Positions 482-45,857 of a stretch of 64,000 bases of DNA are shown one piece after another (position 1 is the first letter of the stretch; each line of letters opens with the position of its first letter). Both the position numbers and the translations under genes were made by a program. The notes beneath the pieces are model-generated. The model was not told the origin of the DNA. It ran no database searches and saw only the letters and a program-made list of their open reading frames with translations. Where the stretch lies: sequence record NC_062581.1. One strand, given 5' to 3'.

Positions 482-886
482 ATGTATACATCTAATACTC
501 CAACAGGACGTAACATGCCTTTTTACATACCAAAACCAGAACCCATTGAAGTCCATCGTTGGTTTAAAAACGGGGATGCTCCAGGGGATGGGGTTATCAA
601 CAATATTAATAGTGGCGCAGTGGTTGCACGACATCACACCTACAGGCACTTTACTGGTGCTCAACTTTGTCCTAAGTGTAACAAACGCATGGCTGACCAT
701 GGTACCATTCAAAAGCGAATGGGTGAACTGGAATTTGTAGTCTGCCCAGGTGATTGGGTACGTATCCATCGAGATGATAAGAAGCGTATATTGGGTTACT
801 CGGTAATAACGGATAAAGTAATTACTGAACGCTATATTAACATGGCTCTACTGCAGCCAAAGCCACAGGAGAAAGTTAAACGATGA
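482..886 (+). CDS. hypothetical phage protein (WFKNGD...CxxC...HG...VCPGDW pattern, possibly metal-binding)
   Basis: 134-aa ORF; stop overlaps next start (ATGA). Confidence 0.7.
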   Translation: MYTSNTPTGRNMPFYIPKPEPIEVHRWFKNGDAPGDGVINNINSGAVVARHHTYRHFTGAQLCPKCNKRMADHGTIQKRMGELEFVVCPGDWVRIHRDDKKRILGYSVITDKVITERYINMALLQPKPQEKVKR

Positions 887-1572
887 ATCCAGTCTACGAT
901 ATTTTCAACGATATTGCCAACAACATGGTAACTGTTGAAAACAAAGAAGAGTTCTTATCTAACACCGTTCGTCTTGTAGGGGCTTCCGGTAAAGAACATG
1001 TATTGTCAATTGCTCAGGCACAACTACTACTGGGCGTGTTGGATGGTTCACACCAATTCTTGACTGATTACAATCCGTTGGAATTCTTGCTCTTTTCTTA
1101 TCAGTTCCAAGACAAGATCAAACTGAAGTATGTAGCGGTACAATACCAGATCATCTACGATGCTGATGATGACTCGATCTTTGTTTCAGGTGTAACACGT
1201 CACCCCATGACGGTAGTTGGTCATCCTGACTACGTTGCAGGAGCTTCTGTCCCCATTGAAACATTCCAAACCACTATCCCTAACGTTGGGTTGTATGGTG
1301 GACTGGCATTGGTCAATTGCATTGCTACACAATCTCCGGATTTTGCACCGGTAAAAGGCAGCTTTGGTGGTTCCTTCATTTTTGAATTTGATGGGGGTAA
1401 ACAATCTATCCGTAGATATGTACCGGCTGAAATTGATGAACCAGTAATCCATAAGGAAGAACTGCAAGAAGCTTTAGACGAAGCGGTAAAGAAGTTTGTT
1501 CCTAGTGCAGCACCAAAAGTTGAATTTAACGGTATTAAAGATACCTCTACCAAAACAGAACAGGAGATTTAA
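883..1572 (+). CDS. hypothetical protein (positional candidate for the gp2/ChmB-type shell-associated protein)
   Basis: 229-aa ORF two genes upstream of DHFR; identity inferred from synteny only. Confidence 0.6.
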   Translation: MNPVYDIFNDIANNMVTVENKEEFLSNTVRLVGASGKEHVLSIAQAQLLLGVLDGSHQFLTDYNPLEFLLFSYQFQDKIKLKYVAVQYQIIYDADDDSIFVSGVTRHPMTVVGHPDYVAGASVPIETFQTTIPNVGLYGGLALVNCIATQSPDFAPVKGSFGGSFIFEFDGGKQSIRRYVPAEIDEPVIHKEELQEALDEAVKKFVPSAAPKVEFNGIKDTSTKTEQEI

Positions 1573-1574
1573 AA

Positions 1575-2273
1575 ATGGGTGATCATGACGCTGATGATGA
1601 ATGTGTTGTAGACGAAGTTCTATCTGTGGTTAAAGCAAAACTAGAAGAAAACAATGAACCGGTTTATGATGGTGGGTTTGCACCAGACCTACACACATTT
1701 CCTCCTTATCAAGCTTTAGACATAATTACAGCACGCGTTGCTGATTTGGTTGAAGCAACCGTTAACCCGGACGGCACACTGCCACGTACCGTTACAATGG
1801 TTATTGATAACAAGATTGTTGAAGTAGATCGTGTTATTGCATCACAGTTTATGCGAGTATTGTTTATTGATCAAAAAGTAGATGATCGACAAGCTCGATG
1901 CTCCAGACTGTTGCAACTATTGAAGAATCGTTTTGGTAACCTTATCCCGCACACTTTCAATGGAAAAGTTACCCGTGTTGAAATGGAAGTGGATGCTGTA
2001 ACGTTAGATATCAAAAGTACTTGGGATGTAACACACCAAGATTCTAACAACAGTGCGGGTATTAGTCTGCCTACTGTTAAACGTTACGTATACGAAGATA
2101 AGTTTTTCCGCATTTCGGAAATGCATCGTTTCATCTGGGAACTGGGCCAAGTCAGTGGTCATGAAATCCGTCATGATGGTGTACTCCCCAATTTCATTGT
2201 TACCATTCTTCCAGAAAGCAGTTCTGTTATTGCATGTAAACTACAAAGTGAACGTAAGGTAATCAGTGAATGA
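1575..2273 (+). CDS. hypothetical protein
   Basis: 232-aa ORF, GGAG RBS upstream, overlaps DHFR start. Confidence 0.7.
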   Translation: MGDHDADDECVVDEVLSVVKAKLEENNEPVYDGGFAPDLHTFPPYQALDIITARVADLVEATVNPDGTLPRTVTMVIDNKIVEVDRVIASQFMRVLFIDQKVDDRQARCSRLLQLLKNRFGNLIPHTFNGKVTRVEMEVDAVTLDIKSTWDVTHQDSNNSAGISLPTVKRYVYEDKFFRISEMHRFIWELGQVSGHEIRHDGVLPNFIVTILPESSSVIACKLQSERKVISE

Positions 2274-2749
2274 AACTTGCTTTAATTGCAGCAATAGGGG
2301 ATGGCGGTGCAATTGGTTATAAAGGTCAAATGCCTTGGAAGTGTTCTAACGATTTAAAACACTTTAAGCAAGTTACCAGTGCAGATGATGCGGCTTTAGT
2401 AATGGGGCGTCGTACTTGGGATTCTTTACCTGAACCCAAATTGCCTGGTCGAGTATGCGTGGTGTTAACTTCACAACCCATTACTGGACGTTGTCTTTCC
2501 GCTAGTAACTTTGATGATGCAATTAAAATGATTGAAGGGTTGGGGCTTAAGAAAACCTTCATCATTGGTGGAAGTCTTTTGTTCAATGAATACTATGAAA
2601 AGTGTGATGAGCTATATCTCACTTACATTGAAGCCCCTATTGAAAATGCTGACACCTTTTTTAACCCAATCATAAAGCCTCAAGTTTGGCGTGCAATAGA
2701 ATCCACAATTCACACGGATTGTCAGATTACTCGTTGGGTAAAACGATAA
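2270..2749 (+). CDS. folA: dihydrofolate reductase
   Basis: Motifs LIAA...IGxxxxMPW, DLKHFK, VMGRRTWDSLP, LPGR, IIGG. Confidence 0.97.
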   Translation: MKLALIAAIGDGGAIGYKGQMPWKCSNDLKHFKQVTSADDAALVMGRRTWDSLPEPKLPGRVCVVLTSQPITGRCLSASNFDDAIKMIEGLGLKKTFIIGGSLLFNEYYEKCDELYLTYIEAPIENADTFFNPIIKPQVWRAIESTIHTDCQITRWVKR

Positions 2750-42047: not shown

Positions 42048-43952
42048 ATGTCGGTAAATTCCAGCAACAAAGAAGCAGTAAACGTTCAAACTGCACAACA
42101 AGCCCCAGCACAAAAACAAGCTGCACAACAACCACAACAGTCCCAGGTATCGCAACCAATGCAACCAGCTATTCCAGTTTCCAATGGTCCGGCTACACTG
42201 AATTCTCGTTTCAGCCGTTCCGGTCGTGCCGATGGCAATGATGCCCGCACCACCAAAGCATTCGTCGCATTCGATGAAGCTCGTGTAGAAGCAATCGCTC
42301 AGCAAGATCTCGCTGATACTTTCCACCTTTTCCGTTTCGACCGTGTTCCACACCAAGTCGCCATGGCTTCAATCCTGGTTCTGAAAGTTGTTAACAACCG
42401 TGGCGAACCAGCAATCCTGGTTAAAGCTCTGCCAGTTGTTGATAACTCGGTTGCTGTTAAACCAAAGACCTTCCAAATCGCTAACGGTTTCAGCACCTTC
42501 GACAAGTTCGAAGCCAAGCCTGATTCCAGCGACATCTTCACCCCGCTGTACTGGGGCCGTATCGTTGCTCACGTTCGCAACGTAACTGGTCACCCTAACG
42601 CAGCTGTATACAACGCTGGTCCACAAGACATCCACGCTGAATTCGATTTCGAAGACAAAGTGGCCGTTCGTAACCTGCTGATCAAATCGGTTAACTCCGT
42701 TGAAGACACCATGGCTCGTCTGAGCGATGAGCGTCCATTCAGCCTGGCTACTGACATGCAGTCTGCTGATGAAATCCTGGCAGCTACTATCGACTACACC
42801 GGTACTCCGGTTGAATCGAACACCGGTATCCCACAACGTGCTGATATCGTTGTAAGTCTGCAGCGCCGTAAGAAGCACGGTCAGCAAACTCAAGAAAACG
42901 AGTACTACGACGCTGACTCACAGCTGAACTCCGTGGCAATGTTCACCGACCTGGAATACGCACCGCAACAAGTGCAACCACAGGCTTACGGCATTCCACA
43001 AGGTCCACTGCCAGCACCGTTCATGCCAGCTCTGGTTGTTACTGCTGTTAAGCAAGCTAACTGGATCATGGCTAACACCCCAGAAATGTACTTCTTCGCT
43101 CTGGGTAACGCTTTCCGTGCAACCAACGGTCAAGGCTGGGCTAAACAGTTCCTGCCAACCATCGGTCGTGTGAAAGATCCACGTGACATCGGTGCAGTCG
43201 GTTACCTGACTCAATCTGGTCTGAAAGTTGAGACCAAGTCGGAAACCTTCACCGAGCAAGACTTCGCTGGTCTGATGTTCTCTCAAGTACAACAGAACCC
43301 AGTCATCATGCTCGACCTGAACCGCATGGGTGATAACTCGTTCATCGAATCCATGATCCTGGATTCCCTGGGTGGTCCAAACGAACAAGCTGCAAAGGCT
43401 GGCATCATCCGCATCCTGTGCAACCTGTACGGTCGTGATAACTTCACCTCCCTGTTCGATACCACCAACGAATGGCTGTTCCGTCCTTACGGTACTGACT
43501 TCCACCTGGGTTACTACCCAGATGAAAACGGCGAGAAGCGTGACCGCCGTGATCTGGATACCCTGTACGCTCTGAACGCCTGTGATGGTGTTGTTCCAGA
43601 GTTCATGGACTGGTACGCTGCCAAGTGCAACGGTAACGTTCACTCGGAAGTTCGTCTGAAGAAATCCGAGCAGTACGACAAGCAGTACCTGGGCAACGTG
43701 ACTTACGCTGGTCGTGTTACTCGTGTCATCCTCAACCCTAAACTGGTTGCTGCGATGGATGCTGCTGCTGGTAAAGCTGGTATCGCTGTCACCATGGACA
43801 ACATCGGTTCTGTATTCGGTGGTCAACGCTTCCAGGGTAACATGGGTCTGGCTGGTCTGAACGTACAAGGTGTTGCTAACGTAGCATCGTACATCCAGAA
43901 CCAAAATGTCTACGCTACCCCAGTCGGTGGCGCAACTGGCATGATGTACTAA
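42048..43952 (+). CDS. chmA: chimallin, major phage nuclear shell protein
   Basis: 634 aa; segments AQQDLAD.F...RFDR..HQV, RNLLIKSVN, ANTPEMY.FAL.NAFR, DLNRMG, EKRDRRDLD, YD.QYLG match 201phi2-1 gp105 as recalled; sits before nvRNAP beta'. Confidence 0.96.
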   Translation: MSVNSSNKEAVNVQTAQQAPAQKQAAQQPQQSQVSQPMQPAIPVSNGPATLNSRFSRSGRADGNDARTTKAFVAFDEARVEAIAQQDLADTFHLFRFDRVPHQVAMASILVLKVVNNRGEPAILVKALPVVDNSVAVKPKTFQIANGFSTFDKFEAKPDSSDIFTPLYWGRIVAHVRNVTGHPNAAVYNAGPQDIHAEFDFEDKVAVRNLLIKSVNSVEDTMARLSDERPFSLATDMQSADEILAATIDYTGTPVESNTGIPQRADIVVSLQRRKKHGQQTQENEYYDADSQLNSVAMFTDLEYAPQQVQPQAYGIPQGPLPAPFMPALVVTAVKQANWIMANTPEMYFFALGNAFRATNGQGWAKQFLPTIGRVKDPRDIGAVGYLTQSGLKVETKSETFTEQDFAGLMFSQVQQNPVIMLDLNRMGDNSFIESMILDSLGGPNEQAAKAGIIRILCNLYGRDNFTSLFDTTNEWLFRPYGTDFHLGYYPDENGEKRDRRDLDTLYALNACDGVVPEFMDWYAAKCNGNVHSEVRLKKSEQYDKQYLGNVTYAGRVTRVILNPKLVAAMDAAAGKAGIAVTMDNIGSVFGGQRFQGNMGLAGLNVQGVANVASYIQNQNVYATPVGGATGMMY

Positions 43953-43960
43953 GTTTCAAT

Positions 43961-44330
43961 GGTTAGTTAGCCGTATGGTAACTGTGTAATGAACGTAACC
44001 AACTCTTAAGCGAAAGCGTGCTAGTAGGTACACGGTTCTAAGCTCTTGGGAGTACTGATAACTTAAATGTTATTCCTGCTCCGACTAACTTGCTACAACA
44101 CACTAGCTCAATTGCAAGTGCGTGCACCCTAAAGGTCTGACGCTTGTGTGTATTAATGACCTGCCAAAGTCTCGATGTGATTAAAAACTTACGGTGATGT
44201 AATCGAGAAGTGGATATTAACATCCCACCTAGCAATAGGTAAACCGTATTACGTGGTGACGCTAAACCTCCGTGGCGCATGGTCTCATGTTCCCGGCTAT
44301 TAGTCATCTCGTAAATTAGCAGATAGGAAT
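43961..44330 (+). ncRNA. candidate large structured non-coding RNA / 3' UTR of chmA
   Basis: No credible ORF; at least 8 helices, GNRA loops, 5'/3' ends pair; ends at a UUCG terminator. Confidence 0.62.
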
Positions 44331-44348
44331 GGCTCCCTTCGGGGAGCC
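44331..44348 (+). terminator. hairpin terminator
   Basis: GGCTCCC-TTCG-GGGAGCC plus T-rich tail. Confidence 0.9.
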
Positions 44349-44387
44349 ACTCTTATTTCTTTTTTGTCATTTGTATCGAGGTAAGAA

Positions 44388-45857
44388 TTGGGACTACATG
44401 CTGAAATTGTAGACCACGACGAGATGCTGGCAAACCAACGAGGAATCGTTAAGTTTGCAAATGACTACAATGCGTCCAATACCGAATCGAAAGAAGAGTT
44501 CCAGCGAGCGCTGTATTCTCACTTTGATAACGTTGATGCCATTGAAGTATCAGCGAGTTGTGAATGTGGTCATTTGGATGAAGCTTATGACCTAGGCGTA
44601 GTTTGTGATGTATGTAGTACACCCGTAGTATCAACAGCGAGCCAACCTATCGTACCCTCGATGTGGATGCGTGCTCCTGAAGGCGTCGATTCGATGATCT
44701 CGCCTGAGTTGTTGATTATGTTGATGGGACACATGCAGGGCAAGGAGTTTAACTTCCTAGCTTATTTCATGGACACGACGTATCAGTTTGATGCGGCCAC
44801 AATCTCCTCCCGTGAAACAGATCGTAAAGTAAAACGGTTATTAGCACAAAACATCCCCCGTGGCTTGAACCACTTCATTCGTAACTTTGACACCATCATC
44901 AAGTTCTGTATGGATTGTGGTATTATCGGAACAGGCAAACATGAGTTCTATGAATTCTTGGTGCAGAATAAGCATGCATTGTTTCCGGCGGCCATTCCAA
45001 TTCCAACCAAGTTGTGCTTTGTTGTAGAATCCACTACCTCGGGTTCTTACATCGATAAGCCGATTGGTCCTGCGATTGATGCGGCACTCACAATGGGTGG
45101 CATCCTTCATAGTCCAATACCGTTGAAGCCCATCACGGTACAAAACCGCTGCGCCAAAGCGCTGCTGTTAATGGCTACATTCCACGAGAACTATGACAAG
45201 CAACGTATCGCTCAGAAACCTGGGTTGATTCGCCGTCACGTTCTAGGTGGTCGTTTGAACTTTACTGCGCGTGCGGTAATTACATCGATCTCTGCACCAC
45301 ACCGCTATGACGAACTCCATATTCCCTGGGGCGTAGCGTGTCAGTTGTTTAAGTATCACATCTTGAACAAACTGAAAAAGCAAGGCATGACTACAATGGA
45401 AGCCTTGGACTTCCTGTATTCAAATGTGCTGCAGTATAATGATCGATTGAACGGTATCTTTCTGGAACTGATCGCCGAAGCAAAAGGCATCGGTCCAGCG
45501 TGTACGTTCCACCGTAACCCTACTCTACAACGGGGTTCGACTCAGCAGTTCTTTATTACAGTTGTTAAATCAGACCTGACCGATAACTCGATCAGTATGT
45601 CTGTGTTGTGTTTGAAAGCACCAAACGCCGACTTTGACGGCGATCAGCTCAACCTGACTTTGATGCCAGATAACTATCTGACTGATGCAACTGAACGCAT
45701 TGCTCCACACACATGGGTATTGTCAATTGATGATCCACATGAAATCTCTGGTAACTTGGAACTCCAAGGTCCTGTAGTAGAAACAATTGTGAACTATGCT
45801 CACGAAGATTATCTACCAGAACCACCGGAAGAATACAGACACCTTTTGGACGAATAG
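44388..45857 (+). CDS. non-virion RNA polymerase beta' subunit, N-terminal part (phiKZ gp55-like), uninterrupted
   Basis: Zn-binding C.CG...C..C, GRLNFTARAVI, RNPTL, catalytic NADFDGD; TTG start after GAGGT. Confidence 0.93.
   Translation: MGLHAEIVDHDEMLANQRGIVKFANDYNASNTESKEEFQRALYSHFDNVDAIEVSASCECGHLDEAYDLGVVCDVCSTPVVSTASQPIVPSMWMRAPEGVDSMISPELLIMLMGHMQGKEFNFLAYFMDTTYQFDAATISSRETDRKVKRLLAQNIPRGLNHFIRNFDTIIKFCMDCGIIGTGKHEFYEFLVQNKHALFPAAIPIPTKLCFVVESTTSGSYIDKPIGPAIDAALTMGGILHSPIPLKPITVQNRCAKALLLMATFHENYDKQRIAQKPGLIRRHVLGGRLNFTARAVITSISAPHRYDELHIPWGVACQLFKYHILNKLKKQGMTTMEALDFLYSNVLQYNDRLNGIFLELIAEAKGIGPACTFHRNPTLQRGSTQQFFITVVKSDLTDNSISMSVLCLKAPNADFDGDQLNLTLMPDNYLTDATERIAPHTWVLSIDDPHEISGNLELQGPVVETIVNYAHEDYLPEPPEEYRHLLDE

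Follow-up and report, generated by a model that had tools for sequence, protein, structure and literature searches.

What does the phage keep in the long non-coding spacer directly behind its chimallin gene? In Pseudomonas phage Psa21 (NC_062581, Tepukevirus), the chimallin gene chmA, annotated as 'nuclear shell protein', is separated from the gene for the nvRNAP beta' N-terminal subunit by a non-coding spacer of 435 nucleotides (nt). The window analysed here is bases 1-64000 of this genome (identity 100%), and all positions of Psa21 are counted in it. A sequence-only reading of the window had proposed a structured non-coding RNA on the chmA strand and had linked it to the chimallin shell or the phage nucleus. 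Covariation across relatives bears out the structured RNA and its strand, and the chimallin link found no support. On the sequence comparison described below, 44098-44248 on the plus strand, the conserved core, is a member of a rare, apparently undescribed family of phage-borne structured RNAs.

Covariation and fold of the core

The core was compared in 14 distinct members, which are Psa21, the Pseudomonas aeruginosa phage phiHQ, the Ralstonia phage RP13 and 11 viral or metagenomic contigs. In the alignment (A9; an earlier version with 12 sequences agrees), each sequence was cut into 16 blocks by distance from invariant motifs, not by pairing, and the two variable inserts and 1-3 linker nucleotides were taken out, which gave gap-free strings of 102 nt. 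Block alignment was chosen because MAFFT on full-length cores misaligned the members with large inserts and covariance-model alignment truncated the members with inserts. Both were rejected, the latter for pair counts.

Under a model of four helices, 91.6% of the pair cells were paired, compared with 68.4% after shuffling. The double-change cells numbered 100 versus 29.7 and the covariation score was 0.668 versus 0.194, and for each of the three measures 0 of 500 shuffles reached the observed value. Compensatory changes were found in 20 of the 28 pairs, with at least two covarying pairs in every helix; some of the members are related (L250 with L253, RP13 with L247), and the retrieval patterns fix some of the alignment columns. 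When the 3' partners were slid by 1-3 columns as a control, the pairing was only 28-38%. Thirteen G-U cells would be mismatches on the opposite strand, which favours the plus strand. Covariation across relatives, whose absence the sequence-only reading had named as a refutation, is present.

By this comparison the core fold is two tandem H-type pseudoknots with four helices, joined by CAAAG, in the strand order a, 2, a', 2', f, g, f', g' (Table 1). Psa21 has all four helices within the core, which places it in the family. Pseudoknot 1 is made by helices a and 2. The closed helix a is joined to the 3' strand of helix 2 (GACYNGC in the family) by a short A/U linker (WUWAU). Helix 2 (G44114, C44115 and 44133-37 with 44158-64) had been missed by the earlier reading. 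It is paired in 100% of cells in the 14 sequences, its two variable pairs covary as UA/AU/CG and AU/GC, and pseudoknot 1 occurs in the versions AGGUC/GACCU, UAGUC/GACUA, UGGUC/GACCA and CAGUC/GACUG. In pseudoknot 2, helix f of Psa21 encloses the conserved loop GUGAUUAAAAACU, strand g and then GAUGUA, and the family plan is a 13-nt loop (GUGUUAAAAAACU-like), strand g and a loop of 5-6 nt. Strand i is reached 2-3 nt, or inserted hairpins, after helix f closes, and it pairs with strand g in five versions (UACGGU/ACCGUA, UGCAGU/ACUGCA, UUUGGU/ACCAAA, UGUGGU/ACCACA and UGGUAGU/ACUACCA).

About 40 loop and linker nucleotides are invariant in the 14-sequence alignment, and the invariant motifs of the family are CUCAAUUGC, GUCUGACG, UGAC..GCCAAAG and UGUG...CU. 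The core tolerates inserts at two sites, hairpin c and hairpins h. The minimal members (L243, L244, L269, L298 and L289) are 100-110 nt long.

All positions and complementarities given by the sequence-only reading are correct in the sequence, and the comparison divides its helices. ACACAC/GTGTGT (44098-103/44146-51), TCTCGAT/ATCGAGA (44170-76/44202-08) and the pseudoknot TACGGT/ACCGTA (44190-95/44243-48) all carry compensatory changes across the 14 sequences. The hairpin ACCTA-GCAA-TAGGT is present in Psa21, but it lies in a variable insert that is absent from the minimal members.

Upstream of the core, Psa21 and phiHQ share a 5' domain that consists of an outer helix (43961-68/44083-90), a long hairpin (43980-44037, with a GCGAAAGC tip) and a second hairpin (44049-44082). 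RNAalifold gave 26 pairs, 11 of them changed on both sides, from these two sequences only. Two of the helices proposed in this region, AACTGTGTA/TACACGGTT (by eye) and GGAGTA/TGCTCC (by eye and with RNAalifold), keep their structure in phiHQ with other sequence; in the long hairpin, AACUGUGUA/UACACGGUU in Psa21 stands against AACCUG/CAGGUU in phiHQ (by eye). Two others did not survive. Instead of the pairing GACTAA/TTAGTC, 44083-90 pairs with 43961-68 in both phages, with two compensatory changes. As for the closing helix TAGCCG/CGGCTA, phiHQ has no counterpart, and the 3' arm falls within a relic of the old spacer. The minimal members do without the 5' domain (L269 begins 3 nt after a stop codon), so that this domain is, from the comparison, a lineage-specific addition.

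Folding energy, a further check named by the sequence-only reading, gave a divided answer. The whole spacer of Psa21 folds better than its shuffles (z = -3.0, 1/100), but its antisense strand folds comparably well (z = -2.7) and the conserved core by itself is unremarkable (z = -0.6), because nested folding is blind to pseudoknots, the main features of the core. Folding energy was rejected as evidence for a structured RNA, and therefore covariation across relatives is the evidence used here.

The spacer was also examined for coding capacity and transcription signals. The claim that about 380 nt behind chmA hold no credible open reading frame (ORF) stands: from 43953 to 44328, that is before 44329, no plus-strand ORF of at least 25 amino acids was found. 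The antisense gp057 was rejected as a real gene. It has no Pfam family and its best PHROG match is at E = 0.07, no counterpart ORF exists at the homologous place in phiHQ, the indels between Psa21 and phiHQ across its region have lengths that are not multiples of three, and it overlaps the RNA with the covarying helices. It is probably a spurious coding sequence, an annotation artefact. Upstream, chmA is complete, its residues 3-634 aligning to positions 1-627 of PF25677 (the full profile length). As the earlier reading had said, no terminator lies between chmA and 44330. The first one, with its stem at 44330-44349, is the sole terminator-like site on the plus strand of the spacer after the chmA stop. 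Since no terminator precedes it, transcription as a 3' extension of chmA is the simplest assumption for the element, and we infer co-transcription with chmA. The abundance that had been ascribed to the RNA is likewise inferred rather than shown.

Table 1. Features of the chmA-to-nvRNAP region of Psa21 (positions in the window)
Feature	Position	Strand	Remark
chmA (chimallin), complete	42048..43952	+	Pfam PF25677 Chimallin_Phikzvirus, 1053 bits
5' domain	43961..44090	+	common to Psa21 and phiHQ only
Antisense ORF, RefSeq MZD04_gp057 'hypothetical protein'	ORF 44038..44307; annotated 44038-44280	-	sole ORF in spacer; probably spurious
Helix a	44098-44106 / 44143-44151	+	9/9 pairs compensatory in 14 sequences
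Loop CUCAAUU inside helix a	44107-13	+	invariant or nearly so
Helix 2, 5' strand (GC-NRGUC), inside helix a	G44114, C44115 and 44133-37	+	
Optional hairpin c	44116-32	+	splits helix 2 5' strand; 0-69 nt among members
Loop UGACG inside helix a	44138-42	+	invariant or nearly so
Helix 2, 3' strand GACCUGC	44158-64	+	forms pseudoknot 1
Linker CAAAG	44165-69	+	invariant; after helix 2 3' strand
Helix f	44170-76 / 44202-08	+	5/6 counted pairs compensatory; 97.6% of cells paired
Strand g UACGGU	44190-95	+	pairs with strand i
Variable insert h, two small hairpins	44209..44239	+	0-42 nt among members; minimal members without it
Strand i ACCGUA	44243..44248	+	pairs with 44190-95, forms pseudoknot 2
Decayed second copy of last ~35 nt of chmA	44258..44293	+	similarity to D6 chmA end
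Intrinsic terminator	44330..44366	+	stem 44330-44349 plus T-rich tail; kept in D6 and RVTF4
nvRNAP beta' N-terminal subunit gene	44388..45857	+	Pfam RNA_pol_Rpb1_2, E = 4e-10; annotation

Members, contexts and acquisition

With the Psa21 spacer as blastn query, phiHQ was matched at 73% over 145 nt in the same chmA-to-nvRNAP spacer, and RP13 was the third match. Pattern scans with the conserved blocks found L183, L168, L269, L298 and L289 in IMG/VR, and L250/L238, L243/L245, L244/L248, L247, L251, L253 and L252 in JGI and other metagenomes, L252 being the same sequence as L183. The contigs were searched by exact patterns only, and the membership and context statistics are lower bounds. The first pattern, GCCAAAGTC..CTTACGGTG, was dropped since it gave chance matches only, apart from Psa21; looser two-block patterns gave about 100 chance matches each and one true match. 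With four different members as blastn queries, the 50,697 phage genomes searched yielded only Psa21, phiHQ and RP13. Bacterial and archaeal genomes, 185,579 in all, were covered by one pattern scan, which found no member (13 matches, all by chance). The family therefore appears rare and, as far as seen, viral.

A covariance model (R1) built on the nested helices scored the Psa21 copy at 82 bits (E = 3e-16), the single copy in the 64-kb window. The whole RP13 genome gave a single match to it, and D6, RVTF4, KTN4 and HHBS36_1 gave none. No prior description was found in the PhiKZ transcriptome papers, a phage structured-RNA survey and a 2026 preprint on non-coding mapping, a scope that leaves supplementary motif lists outside.

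In all members the element is co-oriented with the flanking genes (sense strand), and its places are the borders of transcript units. In L298, a 318-kb contig with 16 transfer RNAs (tRNAs) in 14 kb, helix a starts at the nucleotide after the CCA of a tRNA-Met, and a tRNA-Leu follows 100 nt later. The RP13 element ends 3 nt before a tRNA-Leu, and in L244/L248, within an array of 9-11 tRNAs, a gap of about 9 nt separates it from a tRNA-like sequence downstream. In L269 it ends 11 nt before a two-piece transfer-messenger RNA (tmRNA) gene (RF04321, 87.5 bits). The elements of L250, L243 and L168 end about 15-55 nt before an ORF start, and those of Psa21 and phiHQ follow chmA and precede the terminator and the nvRNAP gene. 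Downstream of the members lie an RNA polymerase (RNAP) subunit, tRNA-Leu, tmRNA, a lipoprotein and unknowns, which share no function. A sigma-70-like promoter lies about 110 nt upstream of the element in L251.

Several other features were seen near the elements. The circularly permuted (two-piece) tmRNA of L269 (858-1126, minus strand, IMGVR_UViG_3300012041_000058) also matches alpha_tmRNA at 66 bits, its tag frame ends in AKDSYALPIAA and a stop, and ARAGORN missed the gene. Right after the element of L244, 1873-1990 holds the T-arm-like hairpins GGCAGGTTCGAACCCTGC and GTGGGTTCTATTCCCAC. ARAGORN calls it an odd 97-nt tRNA-Ser and the Rfam tRNA model gives no match, and it may be an aberrant tRNA or a tRNA-like RNA. 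The phage tRNA arrays of L298 (7735-7808) and L248 (9487-9560) contain tRNAs with a CUA anticodon (labelled tRNA-Pyl by ARAGORN), possibly amber-suppressor tRNAs as in recoded phages. Around the element, L183 (about 535-2325, minus strand) and L243 (683-1338, oriented plus) have ORF-free stretches of about 1.8 kb and about 0.65 kb, which may hold further non-coding RNAs. Twister-sister ribozymes are matched in RP13 (L005 562-637, record 139392-139467, 36.0 bits) and in L247 (874-957, 37.3 bits), with a gathering score of 34. Both occupy the spacer behind homologous ORFs and share the tRNA-rich region with the element, which they precede by 2.3 kb in RP13 and by 0.7 kb in the related L247. RP13 (171 kb) also has split multisubunit RNAP beta/beta' genes, ORF144 and ORF150 (L308 5742-7295 and 10011-11471).

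How the element came to lie behind chmA is suggested by the close relatives. D6 (about 84% identical) and RVTF4, the closest relatives of Psa21, keep chmA, the terminator and the nvRNAP gene without the element, and their spacers are 87 nt (D6) and 102 nt (RVTF4). The homology of Psa21 to them picks up again just upstream of the terminator. There, 44268-44291 is identical to the D6 chmA end at 20 of 24 positions, which was equalled in 8 of 3000 whole-spacer shuffles, and the match of 44258-44293 to the chmA end of Psa21 itself is weaker (63 of 1000 shuffles). The resulting imperfect direct repeat (43920-43949/44258-44293) flanks about 305 extra nucleotides and reads as the footprint of an acquisition event. 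By these comparisons the Psa21 element is an acquired insertion or cassette absent from the nearest relatives.

The phiHQ lineage gives a similar picture. HHBS36_1 (flank 100% identical), PA1C and PS119XW, the near-identical sisters of phiHQ, are without the element, as are PhiKZ and KTN4. All of these carry a different segment of about 165 nt at this place, followed by a conserved segment of about 228 nt, which suggests that RNA modules at the chmA spot are swapped like cassettes. The PhiKZ-type phages have their own conserved non-coding chmA-to-gp55 spacer of about 390 nt (L007 1042-1435 in KTN4/PhiKZ; L006 1037-1428; L004 3160-3387). Its last 228 nt or so are 85-100% conserved across about 60 genomes, and it folds at z = -3.0 versus shuffles, without an Rfam match; this RNA is distinct from the Psa21 element. 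A chmA-end relic in the PhiKZ-type spacers was rejected as not significant.

The chimallin link and known RNA classes

The sequence-only reading had suggested a shell or condensate scaffold or an mRNA export signal. The element is absent from D6, RVTF4, HHBS36_1 and PA1C, and the core also stands beside a tRNA-Leu in RP13, a tRNA-Met in L298 and a tmRNA in L269. In RP13, no chimallin was detected by tblastn or by Pfam on ten large ORFs, a non-exhaustive search. Absence from close relatives together with unrelated contexts leaves a chimallin-specific role unsupported. The element is probably a general RNA-processing or stand-alone RNA module and not a part of the phage nucleus. Two other functions named by the same reading, a ribozyme and a protein sponge, remain candidates on the present comparison.

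The same reading had matched the RNA to neither tmRNA, RNase P nor a canonical intron, and Rfam agrees. With the 4227 models of Rfam 15, no match reached the gathering threshold in the whole window, and at E <= 10 only chance matches were found in 43800-44500, including an L20_leader match of 24 bits (threshold 58.7) driven by the terminator. At 12 other member loci, Rfam found tRNAs, the tmRNA and twister-sister elsewhere and nothing on the element. ARAGORN found no tRNA or tmRNA in the window, and neither it nor the Rfam tRNA model matched the element in any member. A tmRNA was rejected, as the true permuted tmRNA of L269 adjoins the element and is not within it. RNase P RNA was rejected as well, because Rfam gave no match and the AAAGUC likeness in some members falls in a freely varying helix. 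A riboswitch, as an aptamer upstream of functionally related genes, does not describe a family whose downstream features are unrelated.

A group I intron was rejected since Intron_gpI has no match, a 13-nt loop lies where P4-P6 belongs, and no gene is interrupted. An early reading of GCAGG/CCUGC as P4 and TACGGT/ACCGTA as P7 was dropped when covariation showed the pseudoknot. The second pseudoknot does resemble a group I core in its P3/P7 strand order with an optional P8-like insert, but P4-P6 between P3 and P7 and an exon context are lacking. CUCAAUUGC, and likewise an AAUUGC motif, may resemble the 'P' element of group I J3/4-P4.

The closest known systems are also found among phage RNAs and small ribozymes. 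Theta ribozymes are minimal ribozymes like that of hepatitis delta virus (HDV) that lie beside phage tRNAs and are postulated to process tRNA 3' trailers in cis (PMC10879173). Like them, the element is a small pseudoknotted RNA in phage tRNA regions with a patchy, phage-restricted distribution, and one member, L298, abuts a tRNA 3' end exactly. It differs in being twice the size, in having two separate pseudoknots instead of one nested pair, in lacking the P3/L3 hairpin and a conserved C at the catalytic J4/2 position, and in occurring also before tRNAs and ORFs and in proteobacterial jumbo phages; for the element, cleavage is a proposal. An HDV-like or theta fold was not recognised: only UGACG is at the place of P3/L3, the WUWAU linker is without a conserved C, and Rfam gave no match. 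The theta-like placement directly after a tRNA holds in one member, L298.

The stable RNAs rnaC and rnaD (species 1 and 2) of phage T4, two RNAs without an assigned function, are similar in being non-tRNA RNA genes in slots of a phage tRNA array, but were rejected as homologues (best covariance-model match in T4 10 bits, on the wrong strand). ROOL and GOLLD are likewise structured phage or prophage RNAs, often near tRNA genes and with function unassigned, but they are 500-800 nt long, of another architecture and in Rfam, and their models do not match the element. Twister-sister, pistol and hatchet ribozymes share with it the intergenic position, the lack of fixed gene association, pseudoknots, and invariant loops with free helices. 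Their models give no match at E <= 10, the core of the element is larger, and its catalysis is hypothetical.

Possible functions

We tentatively favour the element as a cis-acting RNA-processing module. It may be a new self-cleaving ribozyme, with its cut at the 5' foot of helix a. Four points suggest this reading: one member directly abuts the 3' end of a tRNA, others precede the 5' ends of tRNAs or a tmRNA, no gene association is seen, and the conservation is ribozyme-like, with ribozymes in the neighbourhood. Unrelated downstream genes are typical of self-cleaving ribozymes, unlike riboswitches. Loops that stay invariant while the helices vary freely, together with hairpins that members may lack, make a conservation pattern in keeping with a catalytic or binding core. 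For the trimming of phage tRNAs by ribozymes, the theta ribozymes are the precedent (PMC10879173).

On a guess based on its anatomy and context, the core would cleave itself at the 5' foot of helix a or close to it and would thereby separate the upstream RNA (tRNA 3' end, ORF or chmA mRNA) from the downstream tRNA, tmRNA or ORF. In Psa21, cleavage would give the chmA mRNA a defined 3' end and free a compact pseudoknotted RNA, the downstream product being a tail of about 250 nt that ends at the terminator. The module would be accessory and exchangeable, outside chimallin function. A broader version, that the family might be a new class of self-cleaving or self-processing ribozymes punctuating the polycistronic transcripts of large phages, a cassette recruited to the chimallin message tail in Psa21 and phiHQ, is more doubtful.

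Several points weigh against processing by cleavage. Cleavage is hypothetical in every member, neither a candidate site for it nor a catalytic nucleotide can be pointed out, and the core of 100-110 nt exceeds most small self-cleaving ribozymes. Exact abutment to a tRNA 3' end is seen in a single case (L298), and the twister-sister association is effectively that of one lineage, RP13 and L247 being syntenic. In Psa21 the terminator 80 nt downstream already ends the transcript, and the benefit of cleavage is not obvious. The block alignment was motif-anchored and designed with the model in mind, not blind, its helix columns being set by motif distance. Finally, the positions in tRNA arrays would fit equally a stand-alone RNA released by host RNase P, RNase E or RNase Z.

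Such a stand-alone RNA, stable and acting in trans, is nearly as likely as a processing module, although both are doubtful, and nothing computed separates the two. Its double pseudoknot would bind a protein (of the host or of the phage), another RNA or the ribosome, and it would ride on strong transcripts (chmA, tRNA arrays) from which RNase P, 3' trimming or, in Psa21, the terminator would release it. The tRNA-like slots in the arrays of L298, L244/L248 and RP13 are consistent with this, as T4 keeps its stable rnaC and rnaD in its tRNA cluster, although the element is unrelated to them. A binding surface could well be provided by the invariant unpaired nucleotides, roughly 40 in number, and the patchy distribution fits an accessory factor, e.g. 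a counter-defence RNA. chmA is highly expressed early in infection, and a slot behind it would favour the expression of a stand-alone RNA. However, no binding partner is known, an own promoter or terminator is not consistently present (one member, L251, has the sigma-70-like promoter), and in several members that end about 15-55 nt before an ORF start the release site is not obvious.

A cis-regulatory sensor, i.e. a riboswitch-like aptamer or protein operator that controls the downstream gene or RNA through termination or ribosome access, is improbable. The element always lies upstream of, and co-oriented with, something, often about 15-55 nt from an ORF start, its invariant loops resemble an aptamer pocket, and in L250 the UUCCUU right after strand i could, by eye, form pairs with AAGGAA, the Shine-Dalgarno sequence of the gene that follows. 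A terminator precedes the nvRNAP gene in Psa21 and phiHQ, but the Psa21 terminator is also present in the element-free D6 and RVTF4 and is therefore not the element's own platform. No conserved expression platform was found among the members, the downstream targets share nothing, and tRNA and tmRNA would be unusual riboswitch targets.

The element could also act on the polymerase, as an antiterminator or pause element like HK022 put that allows read-through into the nvRNAP gene or the tRNA arrays, which we regard as very unlikely. In Psa21 and phiHQ a strong terminator follows shortly after it, ahead of an essential gene, and in other members highly structured RNA genes lie downstream. All three sequenced carriers (Psa21, phiHQ and RP13) encode split multisubunit RNAPs of their own, for RP13 seen in ORF144/ORF150 and in a 26.5% tblastn match; this covers the sequenced carriers only. 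D6 and RVTF4, however, manage the same terminator and gene order without the element, the L298 element follows a tRNA rather than heading the array, and there is neither a likeness to put (two plain hairpins) nor a matching Rfam model.

The weakest reading, a remnant or variant of a mobile self-splicing element such as an ORF-less group I-like intron at the end of chmA, has in its favour the patchy insertion-like distribution with the imperfect chmA-end repeat around the insert, the P3-P7-P3'-P8-P7' order of helices f and g:i and the group I introns known in Chimalliviridae (PMC11620839), but it too is very unlikely. Intron_gpI gives no match with the cut-off relaxed to E <= 10, the P3- and P7-like strands have no P4-P6 domain between them, and the first domain forms a pseudoknot instead of stacked hairpins. 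The chmA gene ahead of the insert is complete, with nothing to splice, and the other members lie between genes or tRNAs and interrupt no gene.

For the chimalliviruses, these results bring a caution. Long structured 3' tails of chmA exist, but their modules vary by lineage, and close relatives can do without them. It is uncommon for a new natural RNA fold to combine about 40 invariant nucleotides with solid covariation, and such folds have repeatedly proved to be ribozymes, riboswitches or protein-binding machines. The element is a good candidate for a new ribozyme or RNA-protein module. Its novelty is at the level of RNA family and fold, and its functional class may turn out to be a known one. 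If catalytic, it would add a ribozyme class and would be a second example, after the theta ribozymes, of phage-borne processing of tRNA and tmRNA. If it is a stand-alone RNA, it would be a candidate accessory or counter-defence factor of jumbo phages.

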